From positions 1 to 42,436 of the forward strand of contig NIVC01004546.1 of the NCBI GenBank assembly GCA_002269645.1: a stretch of DNA of 42,436 nt. Reading direction: 5' to 3'. The notes below the pieces were generated by a model. That model ran no database searches, had not been told where the DNA came from, and saw only the letters and a program-made list of their open reading frames with translations. Numbering within the stretch: the first letter of the stretch is position 1; the number at the start of each line of letters is the position of its first letter. This document shows positions 2,672-25,719 of this stretch, piece by piece. The translations under genes were made by a program, and so were the position numbers. Source of the DNA: Macrostomum lignano (lineage: Eukaryota).

Positions 2672-3960
2672 TCAAACCAGCTGAACCATAAGCCGAATGC
2701 TCTTCAGTGGTTCTGAGCTTGACGATGAGGCTGCACCTTTCCAAATCATGCCTGTTGAGTCGGATGCAGCGGAGTAGCGGAACTGGCCGGTCGGGTTAGC
2801 AATATAACAACTGTAGAACCACCAGCCGCCATATCCATAAGTATTAGAGCAGGAAGAGCTGCGATGATCGTTATCCCGGTCAGTGGTGGAGAACTGCATG
2901 CCTTTGTGGTAGGTCAGCGAGTCCGAGCTCATGTTTGAGTTGATGTACGAACCGAAGGTCATGGCGTAGTTGGTGCTGGCACCCGCCACGGTGAAGTTGG
3001 TGTACTCGCAGGCAGAGAAAACACCTGCCCAGGTCACAGCTTCCACTCTCAGAAGCCTGGGCGTGCTGCCCGTCAGCTCGTTAACTTTGCGAAGACCTGA
3101 AAGAAATCCAAGACAATCGAACAGAGGTTGCTTCAAATCGAATGTGGACTCACCAATCCAGAAATCAGAGCTGTCTCCAAATCCGTTCTCGTACTCAGTC
3201 CAGTTCCTGGCAAAGCTCACGTTGCCGCTGAGGCGCTGCAGAATCAGGTAGAATACCCTGTCGCCCACCATGTCTGCATGGAAAGTCAAAAAAAACATTT
3301 CTAGTAAGACAGTGTAGGCACTAGTTATGCAATGTCATGGGGTCTTGCGTGTAATCATGTTGTTCAGACAACAGTGCGGGGTGACTGCTGAATTTGTATA
3401 ATCCTCGAGTTCTCGCTAGAAAACAATTAGTTGCTACCAGTTTAAATAAAAATGAAATCGTGATGAAATCTGAGAACGGCATGAGGGCATTCGATCATTA
3501 TCTTAATTTAAATGGATTGGAGCTCAAACTCACACGGCTCCAGCCCGCCGGCAGTGCGCCGAAACACCTGGCTGCTGCCGCCAGCAGCTCCGAAGCTGGC
3601 ATTCCGCACGGCAGACAGCAGGCAGAGACCAGATTCCCGCACGAATGAGACGGCTGAGCACACCAGACTGCCCAGCAACTCGCACTTTATCGCGCAGTCT
3701 CTCTCATTGCGACCCGGCAGAGTTTTGTAGCCAGAGGTCGCAATCGGTTCGCTCACCTGCTGGATAGAGAACTCTGAAATTTCAGTTTGAGTTTTCGATG
3801 ACTTCGAAAATCACATGACTTTGATTGTTGTTGCAATTCGTTAGAGAGCGTGACGTGCTCGATTCCGCTTTACGAAGGTATAACACTGCTTACCTGCAGC
3901 CTGAGCCGCGATGAAGATCACTGATAGCGCAGTCGCCATCATCAACAATTTGCCGAACAT
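2672..3960 (-). CDS. Secreted fibrinogen-related domain (FReD) protein with an N-terminal PAN/apple-like module, about 283 aa, 4 exons
   Basis: Exons complement(3894..3960, 3534..3773, 3154..3273, 2672..3096), all GT-AG, phases consistent, 852 nt. Signal-peptide-like MFGKLLMMATALSVIFIAAQAA; CAIKC..CSAVSF..CLL PAN-like Cys pattern; FReD motifs LQRLSGNVSFARNWTEYENGFG, FWIG/GL, HKGMQFSTTDRDND, GGWWFYSC. Confidence 0.85.
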
Positions 3961-6670: not shown

Positions 6671-9600
6671 CTAACCCCGGATACACTGGATCTGAAAATG
6701 ATGACGGCGTTATGAAATTGAAATTCTAAAAAATTTGTTTAAAAAGCAAAACTGCAGTTAAGAAATGTCAAAACTCAACACAAAACAACAATTTTTTGGA
6801 ATTTCAACTCGGAACTTTGTGCAAAACAATGGCACGAACTCAACATTAAACTGTACAATACAAGGCATTGACAAATTACCCAGCCTATTATTATAAGCCT
6901 GAGCTGCAGCTGATCTATCTGCAGCTCAGTTCATCTGCTCCTCCTCGGGCGTGCTTCGGGGAGGCGCCTCACTGACGGGCACCTTCATTATTTTCGAGTT
7001 AGTAATAAGTGAACGCGCGAGCAATAACCAGAGAGGATTATCTAGAGGAACAGAGGGGATCATCTGGAGGAACAGAGATTATTTGTAGGAACTAGAGGGG
7101 ATCATCTAGATGAACAGAGGGGATCATCTAGAGGAACAGAGGGGATTATCTAGAGGAACAGAGGGGATTATCTAGAGGAACAGAGGGGATCATCTAGAGG
7201 AACAGAGGGGATTATCTAGAGAACAGAGGGATTATCTAGAGGAACAGAGGGGATTATCTAGAGGAACAGAGGAGATTATCTAGAGGAACAGAGGGGATTA
7301 TCTAGAGGAACAGAGCCAGAGGGGATTATCTAGAGGAACAGAGGATTATCTAGAAGAACAGAGGGGATTATCTAGAGGCGACTTGCAGAATACGGAGGAT
7401 TATGTAAAGTTCAACAGGAAATGATACGGACCGATAAAATCAGAGCATTTGTAAGCCAGACAAAATCAATTTGCTCACCACATCGTCAATCTTGAGTATG
7501 CAGCGCACGGTCTCGGCGGCCAGGCTGACGGCACTGCTGCTAACCAGCAGAGGCTGCAGCACGCTCTCGTCCAGGATGTTGGTGATGGCGCCTTTGCGCA
7601 CGTTGATGCCGGCAGTTTTCTCGCCGTTAGCGTGGCGATTGCGCAGCTCGGTGACGGTCTGAATGGCATTGAGGCCGGCGTTCTCGGCCAGAGTGTAGGG
7701 GATGATCTCCAGGCTCTGGGCGAAGGCGCGGACGCAGTACTGCTCGATGCCAGCCAGGGTGTTGCTGTGGGCGGTCAGCTGCTGGGACAGCTCGATCTCG
7801 GGGCGCCGCCGCCGGGGATGAGCTGCCTGAGGAAGGAGATTTTACAGATTAAATATATAGCAAAAACGCTCACAGTACTACTGAGTCAGCTACTGGCTAA
7901 AGCTAAAAACTATCTAGATACATACATTACATGGTGCCGGTATAGTCAGAAGAAGGTAAAAAGTTGTTTTCAGCAATTAATGCTTCAAAACAGGTCTGTG
8001 TAATCATCATTATGACTAAAGCACCTCTCATCCAAAAACTCTTGGAATAAATAGTTGATCAGTAGCGCATTTAGAGTCAGCATAAATTCAGAATTTATGT
8101 CTGTTTTCAAGTTGAACATCAAAACAGGTCTGTATTAATCATCACCCGATGCGCTTTATTGCAAACACAAACAAAATGATTCAACTCACTTCTTCTTGAC
8201 GAGGCAGCGGATGACGCACAGGGCGTCGTGCAGCGAGCGTTCGGCCTCGTCCAGCACCAGCTTGTTGGAGCCGCGCACCAGGATGGACATGGTCTTGCCC
8301 TGGTTCTGGATGCCCGTCACCTGGGATATGGCAATTACAGAAGCGGAAGGGGATGCTTAAATCTCAACGGTTACCTGTTGTGTCTTCCGACAATTCAATA
8401 TAAAATATTGTACTATTATTAATTTATTTTCAGTGCAAGGATGAAAATCTGTTTCATAGATAGCGTCAAAACAGGTCTGTAAATGTCATCATTAGAATTG
8501 CCATTGTTCTCGGGCGGCCTGACCGCATATAAGGTGTCATGCTAACATTTCAAAATTTTAATATTATGTGAAATATACCCCATATTGCAGTCACTGTCAC
8601 TCCCCATATTGCAGTCACTGTCACTCCCCATATTGCAGTCACTGTCACTCCCCATATTGCAGTCACTGTCACTCCCCATATTGCAGTCACTGTTACCCCC
8701 CATATTGCAGTCACTGTCACACCCCATATTGCAGTCACTGTCACCCCCCATATTGCAGTCACTGTCACACCCCATATTGCAGTCACTGTCACCCCCCATA
8801 TTGCAGTCACTGTCACACCCCATATTGCAGTCACTGTCACCCCCCATATTGCAGTCACTGTCACACCCCATATTGCAGTCACTGTCACCCCCCATATTGC
8901 AGTCACTGTCACCCCCCATATTGCAGTCACTGTCACCCCCCATATTGCAGTCACTGTCACACCCCATATTGCAGTTACCGTCACACCCCATATTGCATTC
9001 ATACAACATGATTAGCCATTGAATCCACACCTTGGTAATCTTAGACGAGCCAGTTTGCACCTCTTCGACCAGTTCCGCAGTGCCCAGCATGTCCGGGTTG
9101 AAATGGTCCAGAGAGGCGATGGGCCGACAGTTGAGGGTCTTGCAGATGAACTCAACTTCGTCCCGTTCGATGTCCTTCACCACGAGGATCTTCATCTTGG
9201 CCAGGAAGTGCAGCGCCAGATCGTTGACAGCGTCGCGCAGGATGCTCTTCTGGATGAACAGCACATTGCAGCCGGCCTTCTTAATCTCCTTGACGATGTT
9301 CAAGATGTACATGCGCTCCTCTTTGAGCACGCGATCCATCTGGGTGTAGTCGTTGAGCACAACGGTATTCTCCATGTCAGTCTTTGGCGGCGAGATGCAG
9401 AACTGGATGAGGCCGATGCGGGCCTTCTCCATCCGGTGGACTCCGCCGCTAGACGAGCAGGTCTTGTGGTCCAGCAGCAGGCCGGGGATCATCTCCGTGT
9501 CCTCCACGGTGCCGCCGAGTTTCTTCACAACGCGGATGTCGTTCAGGCTGACGCTGTCCGGCCCGCCGCAGACGGACAAGACGGCGTTGACGGCGATTGG

Positions 9601-12600
9601 GGCGAGGACGCTAGAGTACTGCGACACCACCTTCGAGTTGAGCGAGGTAGACGCGATCTTCATCAGCATCTGCCTGTCAGTCATGTCCACCTGCAGGTTA
9701 AACGGGAATTATATGGGGTAACATATCAATGGATAAAATGGAACAGGGGTTGCTAGGTTACCTTGAGTCATGCTGGGTGGATGATCTTATTTTCTAATTT
9801 GTACTGACTGACCTTTAATTTCAATAAATGAGCTGAATCTCGATGCAGGACCTCCAATCGCACTGTATGATCTCCAATCGCACTGTATGATCTCCAATCA
9901 CACTGTATGATCTCCAATCGATCTTTATGACCTCCAATCGCACTGTATGACCTTCAATCGCCAAATAAGAACCCCGATCGCATTGTATGACCTCAAATCG
10001 CCATATAAGAACCCCAATCGCACTGTATGACCTCCAATCGCCAAATAAGAACCCCGATCGCATTGTATGACCCCAATCGAGCTATATAACCTCCAATCGC
10101 ACTGTACGACCCCAATCGAGCTATATAACCTCCAATCGCACTGTACGACCCCAATCGAGCTATATAACCTCCAATCGCACTGTACGACCCCAATCGAGCT
10201 ATATAACCTCCAATCGCAGTGTATGCCTTCGGTACGCACTTGTATGACCTTCACTTGCGCTATGTGACCTCTAATTGTATTTTTGTAATTGTAATTGTAC
10301 TTTTTTAATAAAATAAACTAATTTGACTAGCTATTATATACTAATCAAAGCTGGAGACTTGACCCGTACAGGCGTGGCCAGAGTGTCGAGAATGTTGCAG
10401 GCGCGTGCGGCGGCCCGCTGAAAGGACTCCGAGATGATGGTCGGGTGGATGCCCTTAGACAGCAGTTTTTGACTGGCCTCCAGCATGCTGCCAGCTAGCA
10501 CAACTACTGAAGTGGTACCGTCTCCGGCTTCAATATCCTGAGCTTTGGACAGCTCAACCAGCATCTTGGCAGCTGGATGGATCACCTTCATCTGCTTGAG
10601 GATGGTGGCTCCATCGTTAGTAATTGTCACCTCGCCCTTGCCTTCTTGGATCTGCAAATAGAGGATGCAGGAAGCAACTAATTAGTCGCAGAATTGCTTC
10701 ACAAATGGATATAAATGAAAAATCTCACCATCTTATCCATGCCCCGTGGACCAAGGCTAGTACGGATAGCAGAGGCCACAGCTAAAATTGAAAATTTAAT
10801 TAAATTTACTTAATACAGCTAATATTTAATATATTTTAGCTATGTAGCTTACCATTGGTAGAATATTAGAATATACATATACTATATATACTACTGAGAA
10901 ATAGAAAACTAAAGTGAAGGAGCTAAAATAGATCTCAAAGCTGACTTTTAAAATACTACTAAAGGCCATGACCTTTTAATCTTGAGAATGCCCACAACTA
11001 GAAGAAATATATGCAATACATATACTAGTAACAATAACAGTAATATATTTTTATATTTAATGCCTATTATATTTAGACTTACAATATATGTTGTTTGCTA
11101 TGCTTTATAAATGTAAAACAATTGGGTAAGTGACTAATGCCATAGTTTGGAAGGCAACATGTACACTAGGATTTCCCAGTGTATAACAAGGTCAAGGTTA
11201 GGATTGTGTACTGCTGTACACCAGAATGAAAATTGCTTCTATAGCTCATGTATGCGAATGTATGCCAATGAACTTTTTATTGCATAAAAATAAGCCAAAA
11301 TAAAAATTATAAATTAGTAAAATTTTTACTAAACTGTATAGAACTAGTTCATTTTAACTATTTTTGCTTTACTTTTATTTCTTGGAAAAGTTAAACCTAG
11401 TCTTTTATTTAGTTTTTCATTTGTTGTAAAAGGCTGGCTATTCTTTCTAATCAAAATTTTACTATTGTAACTATGTACATAGAGACTACACCAAATGTTA
11501 ACTTAATCATTTTTTATATGCTAATTGTGTAGATTGATTGGGACTCAGAACATTTGGTCCCATCTGCTGTCTTGAAAATCTTTATATGCCAAGCTATATG
11601 CCAAAAAGACATGCCAGGCCATAGTCCAGATCATTCTAGGTGCACACCTAAACGAAAATTGAATAATTATAAATGCACATCCAATAAATAAAAGGCTTAT
11701 TCCAATTCTCTATATTCCGTAGCCATTGAGACCCCAAAATTACCATATTCCTGTACTTCCCATAGCTGTAGCTGTAGGTTTAACAAAAAGTCTAGAAAAC
11801 AAAATATTTTGAATCTAAAATATAACCTAGTGCTTAAAAACTGCAAATTAAATTAGAAAATATAATAAACACTCTATAGCCTTTGTAAGATTATATTTTG
11901 TCTTTTTTCAGAGCAACAATACTTAATTGTTATTGAAAGTACTAATGCTAAACTTTTTCAAGAATATAACAGCAACTACCATATTTCTGTAGTCATAGCT
12001 GTAAGAGCAGCTAGCTACTATAGGTGTATCCATAGCTGCCATAGGCCAGGTTGTGGATAGTATGCATGTATGCCGGAACTTTTCCGGCATACAAAACAGC
12101 CACCTTAAGTCCTTGGGGTACACAATCGGCATACACAACCACTGGCGAACTTTGTTGGTATACACTATTGGCATACACAAGTAACACAGCCAGGCATACT
12201 TTTTTGGCGTACAAATTTTGGTGAATGAATTTATGTCATGTATGAAAATTATAATATAAATTAACGTTTTTACGTAAAGTAAAGGAAAATTTGTATCGTC
12301 AGTGATAAACTTTTTGCTTCTTTGAAATTAATAATAAATAACCAGCAATGTTGTGCCCCCTTCAGGGCGGCCAATAAGAAAGGGACAAAATTTAGTAATT
12401 TGAATGAATTAGAAAAATATGCTTTAAAAGCTACAAAAATTTAGTATCATACTAATATACAATCACCCCATTTGAGTAAAAATATCATGGACAAAGATAT
12501 TTGCTATGAATCTCTTTTTTTCTAAAACTAACAAAAGTACACAATAAAAAAACCTTCACAAAAAGTAGCAGCCATTTTCTAGATGGCAAGCCTCCCCCCC

Positions 12601-24400: not shown

Positions 24401-25719
24401 TGGTAGATCTCACATCTATTCTACACTCTCTGGTAGATCTCACATATATTCTACTGTCTCTGGTAGATCTCACATCTATTCTACTCTCTCCCTGGTAGAT
24501 CTCTCATCCAACTTTCTGGTAGATCTCACACCTATTCTATTCTTTCTGGTAGATCTCACACCTATTCTATTCTTTCTGGTAGATCTCACACCTATTCTAT
24601 TCTTTCTGGTAGACTTTACATCTATTCTACTCTCATCGGGACCCTCACAGCTAAAATTCACCCAGGTTCGATTGCGTGGCGCGGCCACATAAATTTGCAG
24701 GCTCAGATCTGCAACGCACCTGGTGAAAGAACGGCTTGGCGCATTTCTCTCTGGTTAGGAAGATGGCAGCCTCGGCGTCCGCCAGCGCCTCCTCGAAGCG
24801 GCCCTGCTTGACGTAGCAGTTGGCTCGGTTCTGATAGAGCAGCTCAAAGTCTTTCGCGATGGCCAGGCCGCGGGTGTAGCAGTCCACGGCCTGGTCATAA
24901 TTGGCCAGTTTGAATTGCGCATTGCCGCGGTCTTTCCATTCAGCTGCTCGGCGCCGATTTCGTTCGCGCCTGTCAGCGCGCTCGGCAGCATCGCGCTCAA
25001 TCTCGCGCATGAAAGCTGCCGACTCGGCGGCATTGGCTACAAAAAAATAAGCAATAGCAGACAACACTACTGTGAGTAGAATTTGAATTCAAATGAAAAA
25101 TACATTACATACCTGATGCATTTCCATTTGATGAGTCTTTTGTGATTACTGTCCTGTTGGTTTCTGAAGTGATAAGGGTGATGTTCAGTTTGGATTGTAA
25201 AGGAACTGAAAAATTCAATGATGCATTTATATATAGAGCAGGAATATGCATAAGGATTTATAATGTTATACCAAGATTCATAGCAAGATTAACAAAAGCT
25301 TTTATGATTCTAGTATAATAGTATAGCATCTGGGTCACAATCTTGGTAGAAATATATATCAAAAGCAAATCATAGGTCTTGATAATTATAGCACAGGCCT
25401 AGCTAAGAATTTTTAGGGAAGATCATTTAGTGCTTTAATGATTAGACACTATTTTACAAAGATACAACAAGAAAAATAGACTATCTATAGTTGCAAAGTA
25501 TAGAAAAGATAATAATATTAATACTTTTCAATGGAATTTAGATAAATTACATTTAAAACATATATACTTACTTGTTCTCAGATCCTCAGACCCATCTTCA
25601 AGTTTTTTTAACAATTTGTCAGCAGCATCAAGTGTTGTTGGATCATTCGATGTTGCAAGTTGCTTGATGCACTCTGAAACATCTTCAACTTTTTTAAGAG
25701 CATCAAGTTCTTCTGTCAT
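21496..25719 (-). CDS. TTC12: Tetratricopeptide repeat protein 12 (TPR + armadillo-like repeats), about 721 aa, 6 exons
   Basis: Exons complement(25572..25719, 25113..25163, 24720..25036, 23641..24030, 22438..23031, 21496..22161); an alternative exon-4 donor exists at 23692. LKKVEDVS N-terminus, NRTVI, FMREIERDAAER, TPRs (KDRGNAQFKLANYDQAVDCYTRGL; LYQNRANCY; KPFFHQ|AKAL), C-terminal LLGNAALCLSHC, NCAILCGKLA, HRERLGQLDGINIL. Confidence 0.85.
22255..22425. repeat. 20-bp minisatellite, TTC12 intron 5
   Basis: TGACCCAACCTGAC(C/T)CAGA(C/A). Confidence 0.9.
23090..23610. repeat. 27-bp minisatellite, TTC12 intron 4
   Basis: TTTCGTGACCTTATTTGACC(C/T)AACTAT, decaying toward 23600. Confidence 0.9.
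24083..24635. repeat. 30-bp minisatellite, TTC12 intron 3
   Basis: TCTATTCTACTCTCTC(C/T)GGTAGATCTCACA. Confidence 0.95.

Follow-up and report, generated by a model that had tools for sequence, protein, structure and literature searches.

The locus considered here raises the question of whether three short and similarly organised cassettes in the introns of the CCT4 gene of the flatworm Macrostomum lignano code for box C/D small nucleolar RNAs (snoRNAs), which RNA residues these would address, and how two of them could be released from one and the same intron. The window, i.e., the whole stretch of M. lignano DNA that was analysed, comprises 42,436 bases; all coordinates refer to positions in this window. 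Those of the cassette elements were checked by script and run from high to low, since the cassettes lie together with CCT4 on the minus strand. A preliminary description of the stretch had claimed three paralogous guide cassettes for 18S ribosomal RNA (rRNA) on the CCT4 sense strand in the range of 7942–8497, and all three were found there in this orientation. We conclude with good confidence that these cassettes, designated copies A, B, and C, are paralogous members of the U25/SNORD25-snR56-snoR19 family of box C/D snoRNA genes, all three of them encoded in introns of CCT4.

The three copies share a common layout, consisting of a C box (RUGAUGA), 4–6 nt, the guide ACAGACCUGUU, a D' box (UUGA), 9–16 nt, a C'-like box (UGAAA(A/C)), 13–23 nt, and a D box (CUGA). 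All four boxes follow one another in the canonical order and at canonical distances, and each copy shows the combination of RUGAUGA and CUGA at a distance of 60–90 nt that characterises box C/D snoRNAs, with 65 (A), 69 (B), and 63 nt (C) from the C box to the D box. Copy A extends from about 8015 to 7942 (8025 to 7933 including its external stem) and contains the C box AUGAUGA (8010–8004), the guide ACAGACCUGUU (7999–7989), the D' box UUGA (7988–7985), a C'-like UGAAAA (7972–7967), a D-guide region (7963–7950), and the D box CUGA (7949–7946). Copy B is located at about 8150–8073 (8155 to 8064 with the external stem), with the C box GUGAUGA at 8145–8139, the guide at 8133–8123, the D' box UUGA at 8122–8119, the C'-like box at 8109–8104, and the D box CUGA at 8080–8077. 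The place of its D guide is taken by a self-complementary hairpin of 7 bp, AUAAAUU-CUG-AAUUUAU (8098–8082), and an extra inner CUGA is present at 8091–8088. Copy C has approximate mature ends at about 8497 and 8426 and consists of the C box AUGAUGA (8492–8486), the guide (8480–8470), the D' box UUGA (8469–8466), a C'-like UGAAAC (8456–8451), and the D box CUGA (8433–8430).

The copies differ in the structures flanking these boxes. The external stem previously noticed for copy B is indeed present as 7 bp between AGCGCAU (8155–8149) and AUGCGCU (8070–8064) and is the strongest one, but the preliminary description had overlooked a second stem of 6 bp at copy A, formed by GGUGCU (8025–8020) and GGCACC (7938–7933). 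Both stems sit 4–9 nt off the boxes, and copy C is devoid of any terminal or external stem. The fold z-scores were −3.6 for copy A, −3.9 for copy B, and +0.6 for copy C. As a separate observation, base pairing is possible in all three copies between the sequence CUGUUUUGA, made up of the 3' end of the guide and the D' box, and (U)GAAA(A)CAG in the C' region (approximately 7994–7985 with 7971–7964 in A, 8128–8119 with 8108–8102 in B, and 8475–8466 with 8455–8450 in C). This pairing would represent a conserved internal hairpin that has to open before target binding.

The identity of the host gene is evident from the large exon adjoining the cassettes, which matches the delta subunit of T-complex protein 1 (CCT4/TCP-1 delta). 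Conceptual splicing of the window exons yielded a protein of 492 amino acids that matches the M. lignano CCT4 entry of UniRef with 100% identity along its entire length, while the next-best animal CCT4 proteins showed only 72–76% identity. When the UniRef protein was mapped back onto the window, seven coding exons emerged on the minus strand, which together span 15575–6613. Intron 4 (9030–8321; 710 nt, GUGUGG...UCCCAG) holds a minisatellite with a 24-nt unit (about 8565–8990) and copy C, and intron 5 (8189–7827; 363 nt, GUGAGU...CCUCAG) holds copy B followed by copy A, in agreement with the earlier statement that two copies share one CCT4 intron. In intron 5, 44 nt separate the 5' splice site from the C box of copy B, the D box of copy B is followed by a spacer of 66 nt (8076–8011; assigned from sequence and fold) and then by the C box of copy A, and another 119 nt lie downstream of the D box of copy A up to the last base of the intron. 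The corresponding distance from copy C to the last base of intron 4 is 109 nt. These values are close to the 110–115 nt given previously for A and C, but calling them typical holds in part only: they exceed the vertebrate optimum of about 70–80 nt between snoRNA and 3' splice site, while matching the 113 nt measured for the 3'-most copy in the CCT4 gene of the mollusc Aplysia californica (see below).

The pattern of identity between the copies is informative about their origin. The guide and D' block of 15 nt is 100% identical in A, B, and C, while the 30-nt flanks on both sides are only 27–50% identical, which is the random level for AT-rich intron sequence. The 15-mer ACAGACCTGTTTTGA, i.e., the guide ACAGACCUGUU followed by UUGA, occurs three times in the 42,436 bases, always in the cassettes and on one strand, compared with 0.08 expected occurrences, and none of 100 shuffled sequences reached three occurrences, even if two mismatches were allowed. 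Because the identity is restricted to boxes and guide while the flanks have reached the random level, we read the pattern as that of ancient duplicates whose function has been maintained by purifying selection, not as that of a recent segmental repeat.

The type of guide can be recognised from its sequence and register. The flatworm guides pair over 11–12 contiguous nt with the universal 18S rRNA segment AACAGGUCUGU(G), placing a residue known to be 2'-O-methylated (Nm) at D'+5, and the core and register of the D'-linked family guide ACAGACCUGU are identical in the three copies. In a cmscan alignment to the snR56 model, the flatworm ACAGACCUGUU-UUGA and the yeast ACAGACCUGUA-CUGA share one register, and from this it follows that A, B, and C would select the same 18S G as snR56, at D'+5. 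The assignment of a U25/snR56-type D' guide aiming at this residue, as proposed before, is therefore retained. SNORD25 is published as the guide for Gm1490 of human 18S rRNA and is hosted by the non-coding gene SNHG1, and U25, snR56, and snoR19 have been equated as guides of the homologous 18S G (Gm1428 in yeast and Gm1423 in Neurospora).

Rfam scans at gathering thresholds returned no match in the whole window, as opposed to the covariance-model hit suggested earlier as a check. In E-value mode, the best Rfam matches of all three copies were snR56, snoR25, Dictyostelium DdR1, and snoU25, with snR56 scores of 39.1 (A), 27.3 (B), and 27.2 bits (C) against a gathering score of 54 bits and snoU25 scores of 15.8–20.7 bits against 50 bits. 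Nor did the gathering mode give any match in the CCT4 loci of Aplysia and of Lottia gigantea, although the Aplysia copies carry the human/yeast-type CACAGACCUGUA-CUGA; they scored 35–39 bits against snR56, similar to flatworm copy A. Because even copies with the canonical guide and D' box stay below it, the gathering threshold is insensitive for the spiralian members of the family, and the failure of A, B, and C to reach it is uninformative. As a check on these three copies, that criterion was too strict, but a profile derived from spiralian cassettes does detect them.

CCT4 loci of other animals were fetched from public assemblies, one locus per species. U25-like cassettes are present in CCT4 of three spiralians, invariably on the sense strand of the gene, with 10 copies in Aplysia, 2 in Lottia, and 3 in the ribbon worm (nemertean) Lineus longissimus. 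One of the Aplysia copies lies in the intron after amino acid 122 and the other nine in a single intron of 9.1 kb after amino acid 170 (locus L133, 7750–17568); their guide and D' box read CACAGACCUGUA-CUGA, and two of the ten, both among the nine in the large intron, have a broken C or D box. Both Lottia copies reside in one intron of 672 nt (locus L132, 7596–7868) and carry CAUUGACCUGUU-CUGA, which pairs with 18S rRNA over 8 bp, a U-U mismatch, and 5 further pairs, with the same G at +5. The three Lineus copies occupy separate introns (locus L136, 2689–4857) and have CUGC or CUGG as D' boxes. Terminal stems directly adjoining the boxes were found in each of these 15 mollusc and nemertean cassettes. 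An initial covariance model based on a MAFFT alignment was dropped, as MAFFT displaced the C boxes, and a box-anchored profile hidden Markov model was built instead from the 15 mollusc and nemertean cassettes only. Applied to the 42-kb window with nhmmer, it recovered exactly A, B, and C with E-values of 3.6e-6, 3.3e-5, and 2.1e-4, followed by the next match at E = 6. Since a profile of spiralian CCT4 cassettes singles out these three copies, CCT4 is a conserved lophotrochozoan host of the U25-type family. Expressed in amino acid coordinates of the M. lignano protein, the host introns are located at about 56/210/301 in Lineus, 122/170 in Aplysia, 491 in Lottia, and 369/413 in Macrostomum. In these four lineages, the cassettes thus sit in different introns of CCT4, so that conservation applies to the host gene but not to the intron. 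No U25-like cassette was found in the single CCT4 loci of Lingula, Helobdella, Dimorphilus, Bugula, Ridgeia, and Limulus or in three CCT4 contigs from ENA metagenomes.

Several points weigh against the assignment as snoRNA genes of this family. The comparator cassettes had themselves been found via the guide motif, which makes the profile test only partly independent, and no flatworm copy attains an Rfam gathering score. The flatworm copies have degenerate D' (UUGA) and C' (UGAAAA/UGAAAC) boxes, with D' aligning to the CUGA of snR56, and copy C combines the missing terminal stem with a positive fold z-score (+0.6). Furthermore, the complementarity to the targets relies on the universality of the respective 18S, U6, and 28S segments instead of M. 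lignano's own sequences, and the accumulation of RNAs of 65–80 nt from the three loci is a prediction. Alternatively, some repeat within the introns, for instance a piece of a transposon or an element involved in splicing, could look like a C/D cassette without being one, as might be suspected in a window rich in intronic repeats and with no Rfam match at gathering level. We regard this as highly improbable: the identity is limited to the functional boxes and the guide and excludes the flanks, order and spacing of the boxes are canonical, the complementarity hits a known methylation site in the right register, and homologous cassettes with terminal stems exist in the CCT4 introns of three other species.

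Taking the copies as U25-type snoRNA genes, the following course of events may be proposed. Copies A, B, and C would be co-transcribed as parts of the pre-mRNA of CCT4, which is a strongly expressed housekeeping gene. The C/D and the degenerate C'/D' motifs of each RNA would then serve for assembly with fibrillarin, Nop56, Nop58, and 15.5K/Snu13. Base pairing of the 11–12 nt of ACAGACCUGUU, which directly precede the D' box UUGA, with the universal 18S segment AACAGGUCUGU would bring one G opposite nucleotide five of the guide, and this residue, corresponding to Gm1490 in human and Gm1428 in yeast, would become 2'-O-methylated. As judged from their identical guides, the three copies should be redundant for this residue.

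This redundancy leads to the question of whether all three copies are functional, or only one or two of them, with the others being decaying duplicates without stable expression. The prime suspect would be copy B, because a hairpin of self-complementary sequence and another, inner CUGA occupy its D-guide region, and the D guide of copy A aligns to that of copy C like a degraded version. Decay does occur in the family, as shown by the two Aplysia copies with broken boxes, and an exonucleolytic pathway of the vertebrate type would yield at most one snoRNA per intron. Neutral relics are nevertheless not expected to retain intact C and D boxes and an identical guide and D' block of 15 nt in all three copies despite flanks at random level, and the strongest external stem belongs to copy B of all copies. 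We therefore consider partial decay of the set quite unlikely.

The release of the RNAs should differ between the two introns. Copy C, without a stem and 109 nt away from the 3' splice site, would be obtained by the usual debranching and exonucleolytic trimming of spliced intron 4. If intron 5 were trimmed from both ends, a B-spacer-A product would remain, so that one cut in the linker is the simplest route to two RNAs. Separation of B and A thus most likely requires an endonuclease, as the preliminary description had already proposed; the cut would fall into the single-stranded linker of about 38 nt between the two stems (about 8063–8026) and be followed by trimming to the small nucleolar ribonucleoproteins. 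Intronic snoRNA clusters are also known in plants. In Drosophila, such clusters have been described as well and are mostly of the H/ACA type. The preliminary description had regarded a dicistronic intron as unusual for an animal; two copies indeed share intron 5, but multi-copy introns are not unique to the flatworm, as Lottia has two and Aplysia nine copies in one intron. These intact arrays argue for a routine release of several copies from one intron in these animals.

The separation of B and A might also dispense with an endonuclease, if only one snoRNA per intron were formed depending on the order of assembly, if B-spacer-A persisted as a stable dicistron, or if a cryptic inner exon divided the intron. 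No endonuclease site is recognisable in the sequence of intron 5, and the predicted fold of the whole intron nests B and A in one larger structure, both of which speak for these variants. A scan of intron 5 revealed no inner donor- or acceptor-like signals, and a hidden micro-exon dividing the intron was rejected for this reason. Moreover, the single-intron arrays of Aplysia (nine copies) and Lottia (two copies) have kept their boxes and terminal stems, which would be hard to maintain if just one copy were released. We regard release of B and A without an endonuclease as somewhat unlikely and favour the cut in the linker.

The preliminary description had further suggested that a new second target may have been acquired by every copy via its diverged D-linked region, which holds at most for copy C. 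As a test set for rRNA targets, we used 122 loci retrieved from contaminated prokaryotic and viral assemblies with the universal 18S target 18-mer, representing 93 distinct types, and scored duplexes of at least 10 bp starting at guide positions 1–3 in comparison to shuffled controls. The D' guide matches 93 of the 93 types, which is circular as a positive control because the loci were retrieved by the target sequence itself. None of the D guides exceeded its shuffled controls on these ribosomal DNA (rDNA) types, with hits in 6/93 types for copy A (shuffle mean 11.3), 3/93 or 2/93 for copy B (outer or inner D box), and 6/93 for copy C. A candidate target of copy A in the large subunit rRNA, AAGAAGGUGAAC (10 Watson–Crick and one GU pair), was rejected as unlikely, since the position to be methylated is mostly U (T in 34 and A in 3 unique loci). 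The D region of copy A aligns with that of copy C (UUUU[U/C]A[-/U]CCUU...CUGA) and looks like a decayed version of it. Copies A and B have no credible second target and would either have lost their second guide or never had one.

Two observations were made alongside this test. The D-linked regions of one Lineus copy (Llon_1, L136 2689–2744) and one Aplysia copy (Acal_9, L133 17006–17063) pair over 10 bp or more with 27 and 25 rDNA types out of 93, respectively, above the other copies, and may be second rRNA guides or reflect a U-rich composition. In addition, the eukaryotic 18S segment occurs in more than 120 prokaryotic assemblies or metagenome-assembled genomes (GTDB representatives, L004–L123), and a second universal 18S motif is present in 111 of the 122 fetched loci, indicating eukaryotic rDNA contamination of public prokaryotic assemblies.

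Copy C, by comparison, carries a second antisense element, UCAUCCUUGC (8444–8435), at guide positions 2–11 upstream of its D box. It forms a perfect Watson–Crick duplex of 10 bp with the U6 segment GCAAGGAUGA (human G67–A76) in the published U6 sequences of human and C. elegans, which are identical through ...CCCUGCGCAAGGAUGACACGC..., and sets human A70 (A65 in C. elegans) at D+5; the paired segment is the internal stem-loop of U6. Only 2 of 5000 shuffled guides attained 10 bp anywhere on U6, and the other 14 natural D guides of the family from the four species (A, B, and 12 mollusc and nemertean guides tested) reached at most 7 bp. By a rough estimate that allows for the multiple RNAs and guides, the chance of a 10-bp match in register on a known Nm site is about 1e-3. 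The methylation at this position of U6, Am70, is established as LARP7-dependent and snoRNA-guided, promotes the installation of m2G72, and has been linked to spliceosome assembly. Reviews do not name a guide for it, in humans none had been known for decades, and SNORD23 was recently proposed from chimeric enhanced crosslinking and immunoprecipitation data to act via a D' element. From these complementarities, copy C appears to be the only copy with a supported second target, the U6 A70 equivalent, and we tentatively put it forward as a possible dual guide for the 18S G and the U6 A equivalent to human Am70, in which the D-linked UCAUCCUUGC would pair with the U6 internal stem-loop and direct the Am70-equivalent methylation as a secondary activity.

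Several results speak against this part of the interpretation. Ten base pairs are the lower limit normally accepted for a functional guide. Neither A and B nor any of 12 D guides examined from molluscs and the nemertean contain the element, and a search of public metagenome and viral contigs for the dual-guide pattern gave 0 matches, so that conservation across species lends it no support. Searching metagenomes with the shared 5' half returned 3 matches, which is about the chance expectation, none of them in CCT4. Copy C may thus address a single target, with its U6 complementarity being coincidental and the D-linked regions of the family being orphan spacers in general, as would also fit to human U25 and yeast snR56 with one known target each. 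The rarity of such duplexes among shuffled guides argues against mere coincidence, as do the exact placement of a known methylated residue, one of 8 in the 107-nt U6 RNA, at D+5 and the start of the match at guide position 2, as in functional guides. On balance, we lean slightly towards the single-target reading of copy C. As no outgroup copy has the U6 guide, a gain in copy C is not distinguishable from a loss in copy A. Rfam scans detected no U6 gene in the window, and a literature search for a flatworm U6 sequence gave nothing relevant.

A dual guide of this kind would not be without parallels. In Neurospora crassa, the paralogs CD19 and CD41 share a D' guide for the homologous 18S G, and just one of them has an added D-box guide, which resembles the flatworm pattern; they differ in that the second target is a 26S site instead of U6 and that each snoRNA occupies its own intron. 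SNORD7, SNORD8/9, SNORD10, SNORD67, SNORD94, and the proposed SNORD23 are intronic nucleolar C/D guides of U6 that place the Nm at +5, as is proposed for copy C, and SNORD16 provides a precedent for an 18S target and a U6 interaction combined in one snoRNA. Compared by description only, the element proposed for SNORD23 is D'-linked, whereas that of copy C is D-linked, is joined to a U25-type 18S guide, and appears to be lineage-specific. If the dual guide proves true, flatworms would have arrived at the methylation of U6 A70 through co-option of a duplicated guide for rRNA, the duplicating CCT4-hosted U25 family would be a natural source of new guide specificities, and M. lignano, a laboratory species amenable to transgenesis and RNAi, would offer a genetically tractable handle on U6 Am70.

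As for the family as a whole, A, B, and C are additional members of the known U25/snR56/snoR19 group, which leaves the general picture unchanged. They agree with SNORD25, snR56, and snoR19 in the antisense element ACAGACCUGU, its D'-linked register, the predicted target G, the size class, and, as far as animals are concerned, the intronic location, but differ from them by UUGA instead of CUGA as the D' box, a degenerate C' box, and scores below the Rfam gathering values. In contrast to human SNORD25, hosted by the non-coding SNHG1, the flatworm genes are hosted by the protein-coding CCT4 and exist in three copies, two of them in one intron. The Aplysia, Lottia, and Lineus cassettes resemble them in family, CCT4 host, sense orientation, and the presence of multiple paralogs, with several copies per intron in both molluscs; they differ in the introns occupied, in stems directly adjoining the boxes, in D' boxes reading CUGA (molluscs) or CUGC/CUGG (Lineus), and in having no U6 guide. 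The intronic clusters of Drosophila and plants share with intron 5 that more than one snoRNA resides in an intron, as an exception to the one-per-intron rule of vertebrates, but the Drosophila clusters are mainly H/ACA, whereas the flatworm has two C/D paralogs in a 363-nt intron of a protein-coding gene. Our literature searches yielded no description of CCT4 as a snoRNA host, no publication on the Aplysia, Lottia, and Lineus cassettes, and no annotation or study of M. lignano snoRNAs. What we did not find described before are thus the role of CCT4 as a lophotrochozoan host, the movement of the cassettes between its introns, and the possible guide for U6 A70. A, B, and C would be among the first family-assigned snoRNAs of M. 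lignano, a model for regeneration and stem cells. In three or more lophotrochozoan phyla, the U25-type family has stayed in CCT4, although it changed introns and gained copies inside them, as opposed to its residence in the non-coding SNHG1 of vertebrates, and CCT4 is therefore suited for studying snoRNA mobility, host-gene fidelity, and the release of multiple C/D snoRNAs from one animal intron.

Some further observations concern related sequences and the surroundings of the cassettes. The metagenome contig SDBU01242723.1 (L128) contains a C/D-like cassette of 73 nt at about 400–480 on the minus strand (AUGAUGA...CACAGACCUGUU-UUGA...CACUGA), which shares the same guide and the unusual UUGA as D' box; no CCT4 exon is detectable on this contig of 1.4 kb. 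In exon 6 of the window CCT4 (7795–7812, minus strand), a run of four C (GCGCCCCGAG) leaves the frame one base short compared to the otherwise 100% identical M. lignano CCT4 protein (...GGGAP|EIELS...), which is due either to a homopolymer error of the assembly or to a broken paralogous gene copy. The genome is partly duplicated, and the UniRef cluster of M. lignano CCT4 has 8 members. Long minisatellite arrays occur in many introns of the window (7040–7380, 8565–8990, 9800–10250, and around 19.0–19.4, 23.1–24.7, 28.0–28.75, and 32.8–33.2 kb); the one at 8565–8990, directly upstream of copy C in the same intron, has the 24-nt unit CCCCATATTGCAGTCACTGTCAC(C/A). Inspection by eye of translated open reading frames suggested as neighbouring genes a fibrinogen-domain protein-like one at 2672–3298 (minus strand), a TPR protein-like one at about 24651–25067 (minus strand), and a multi-exon gene at about 29.0–35.9 kb (plus strand) that looks like a 10-formyltetrahydrofolate dehydrogenase (ALDH1L-like).

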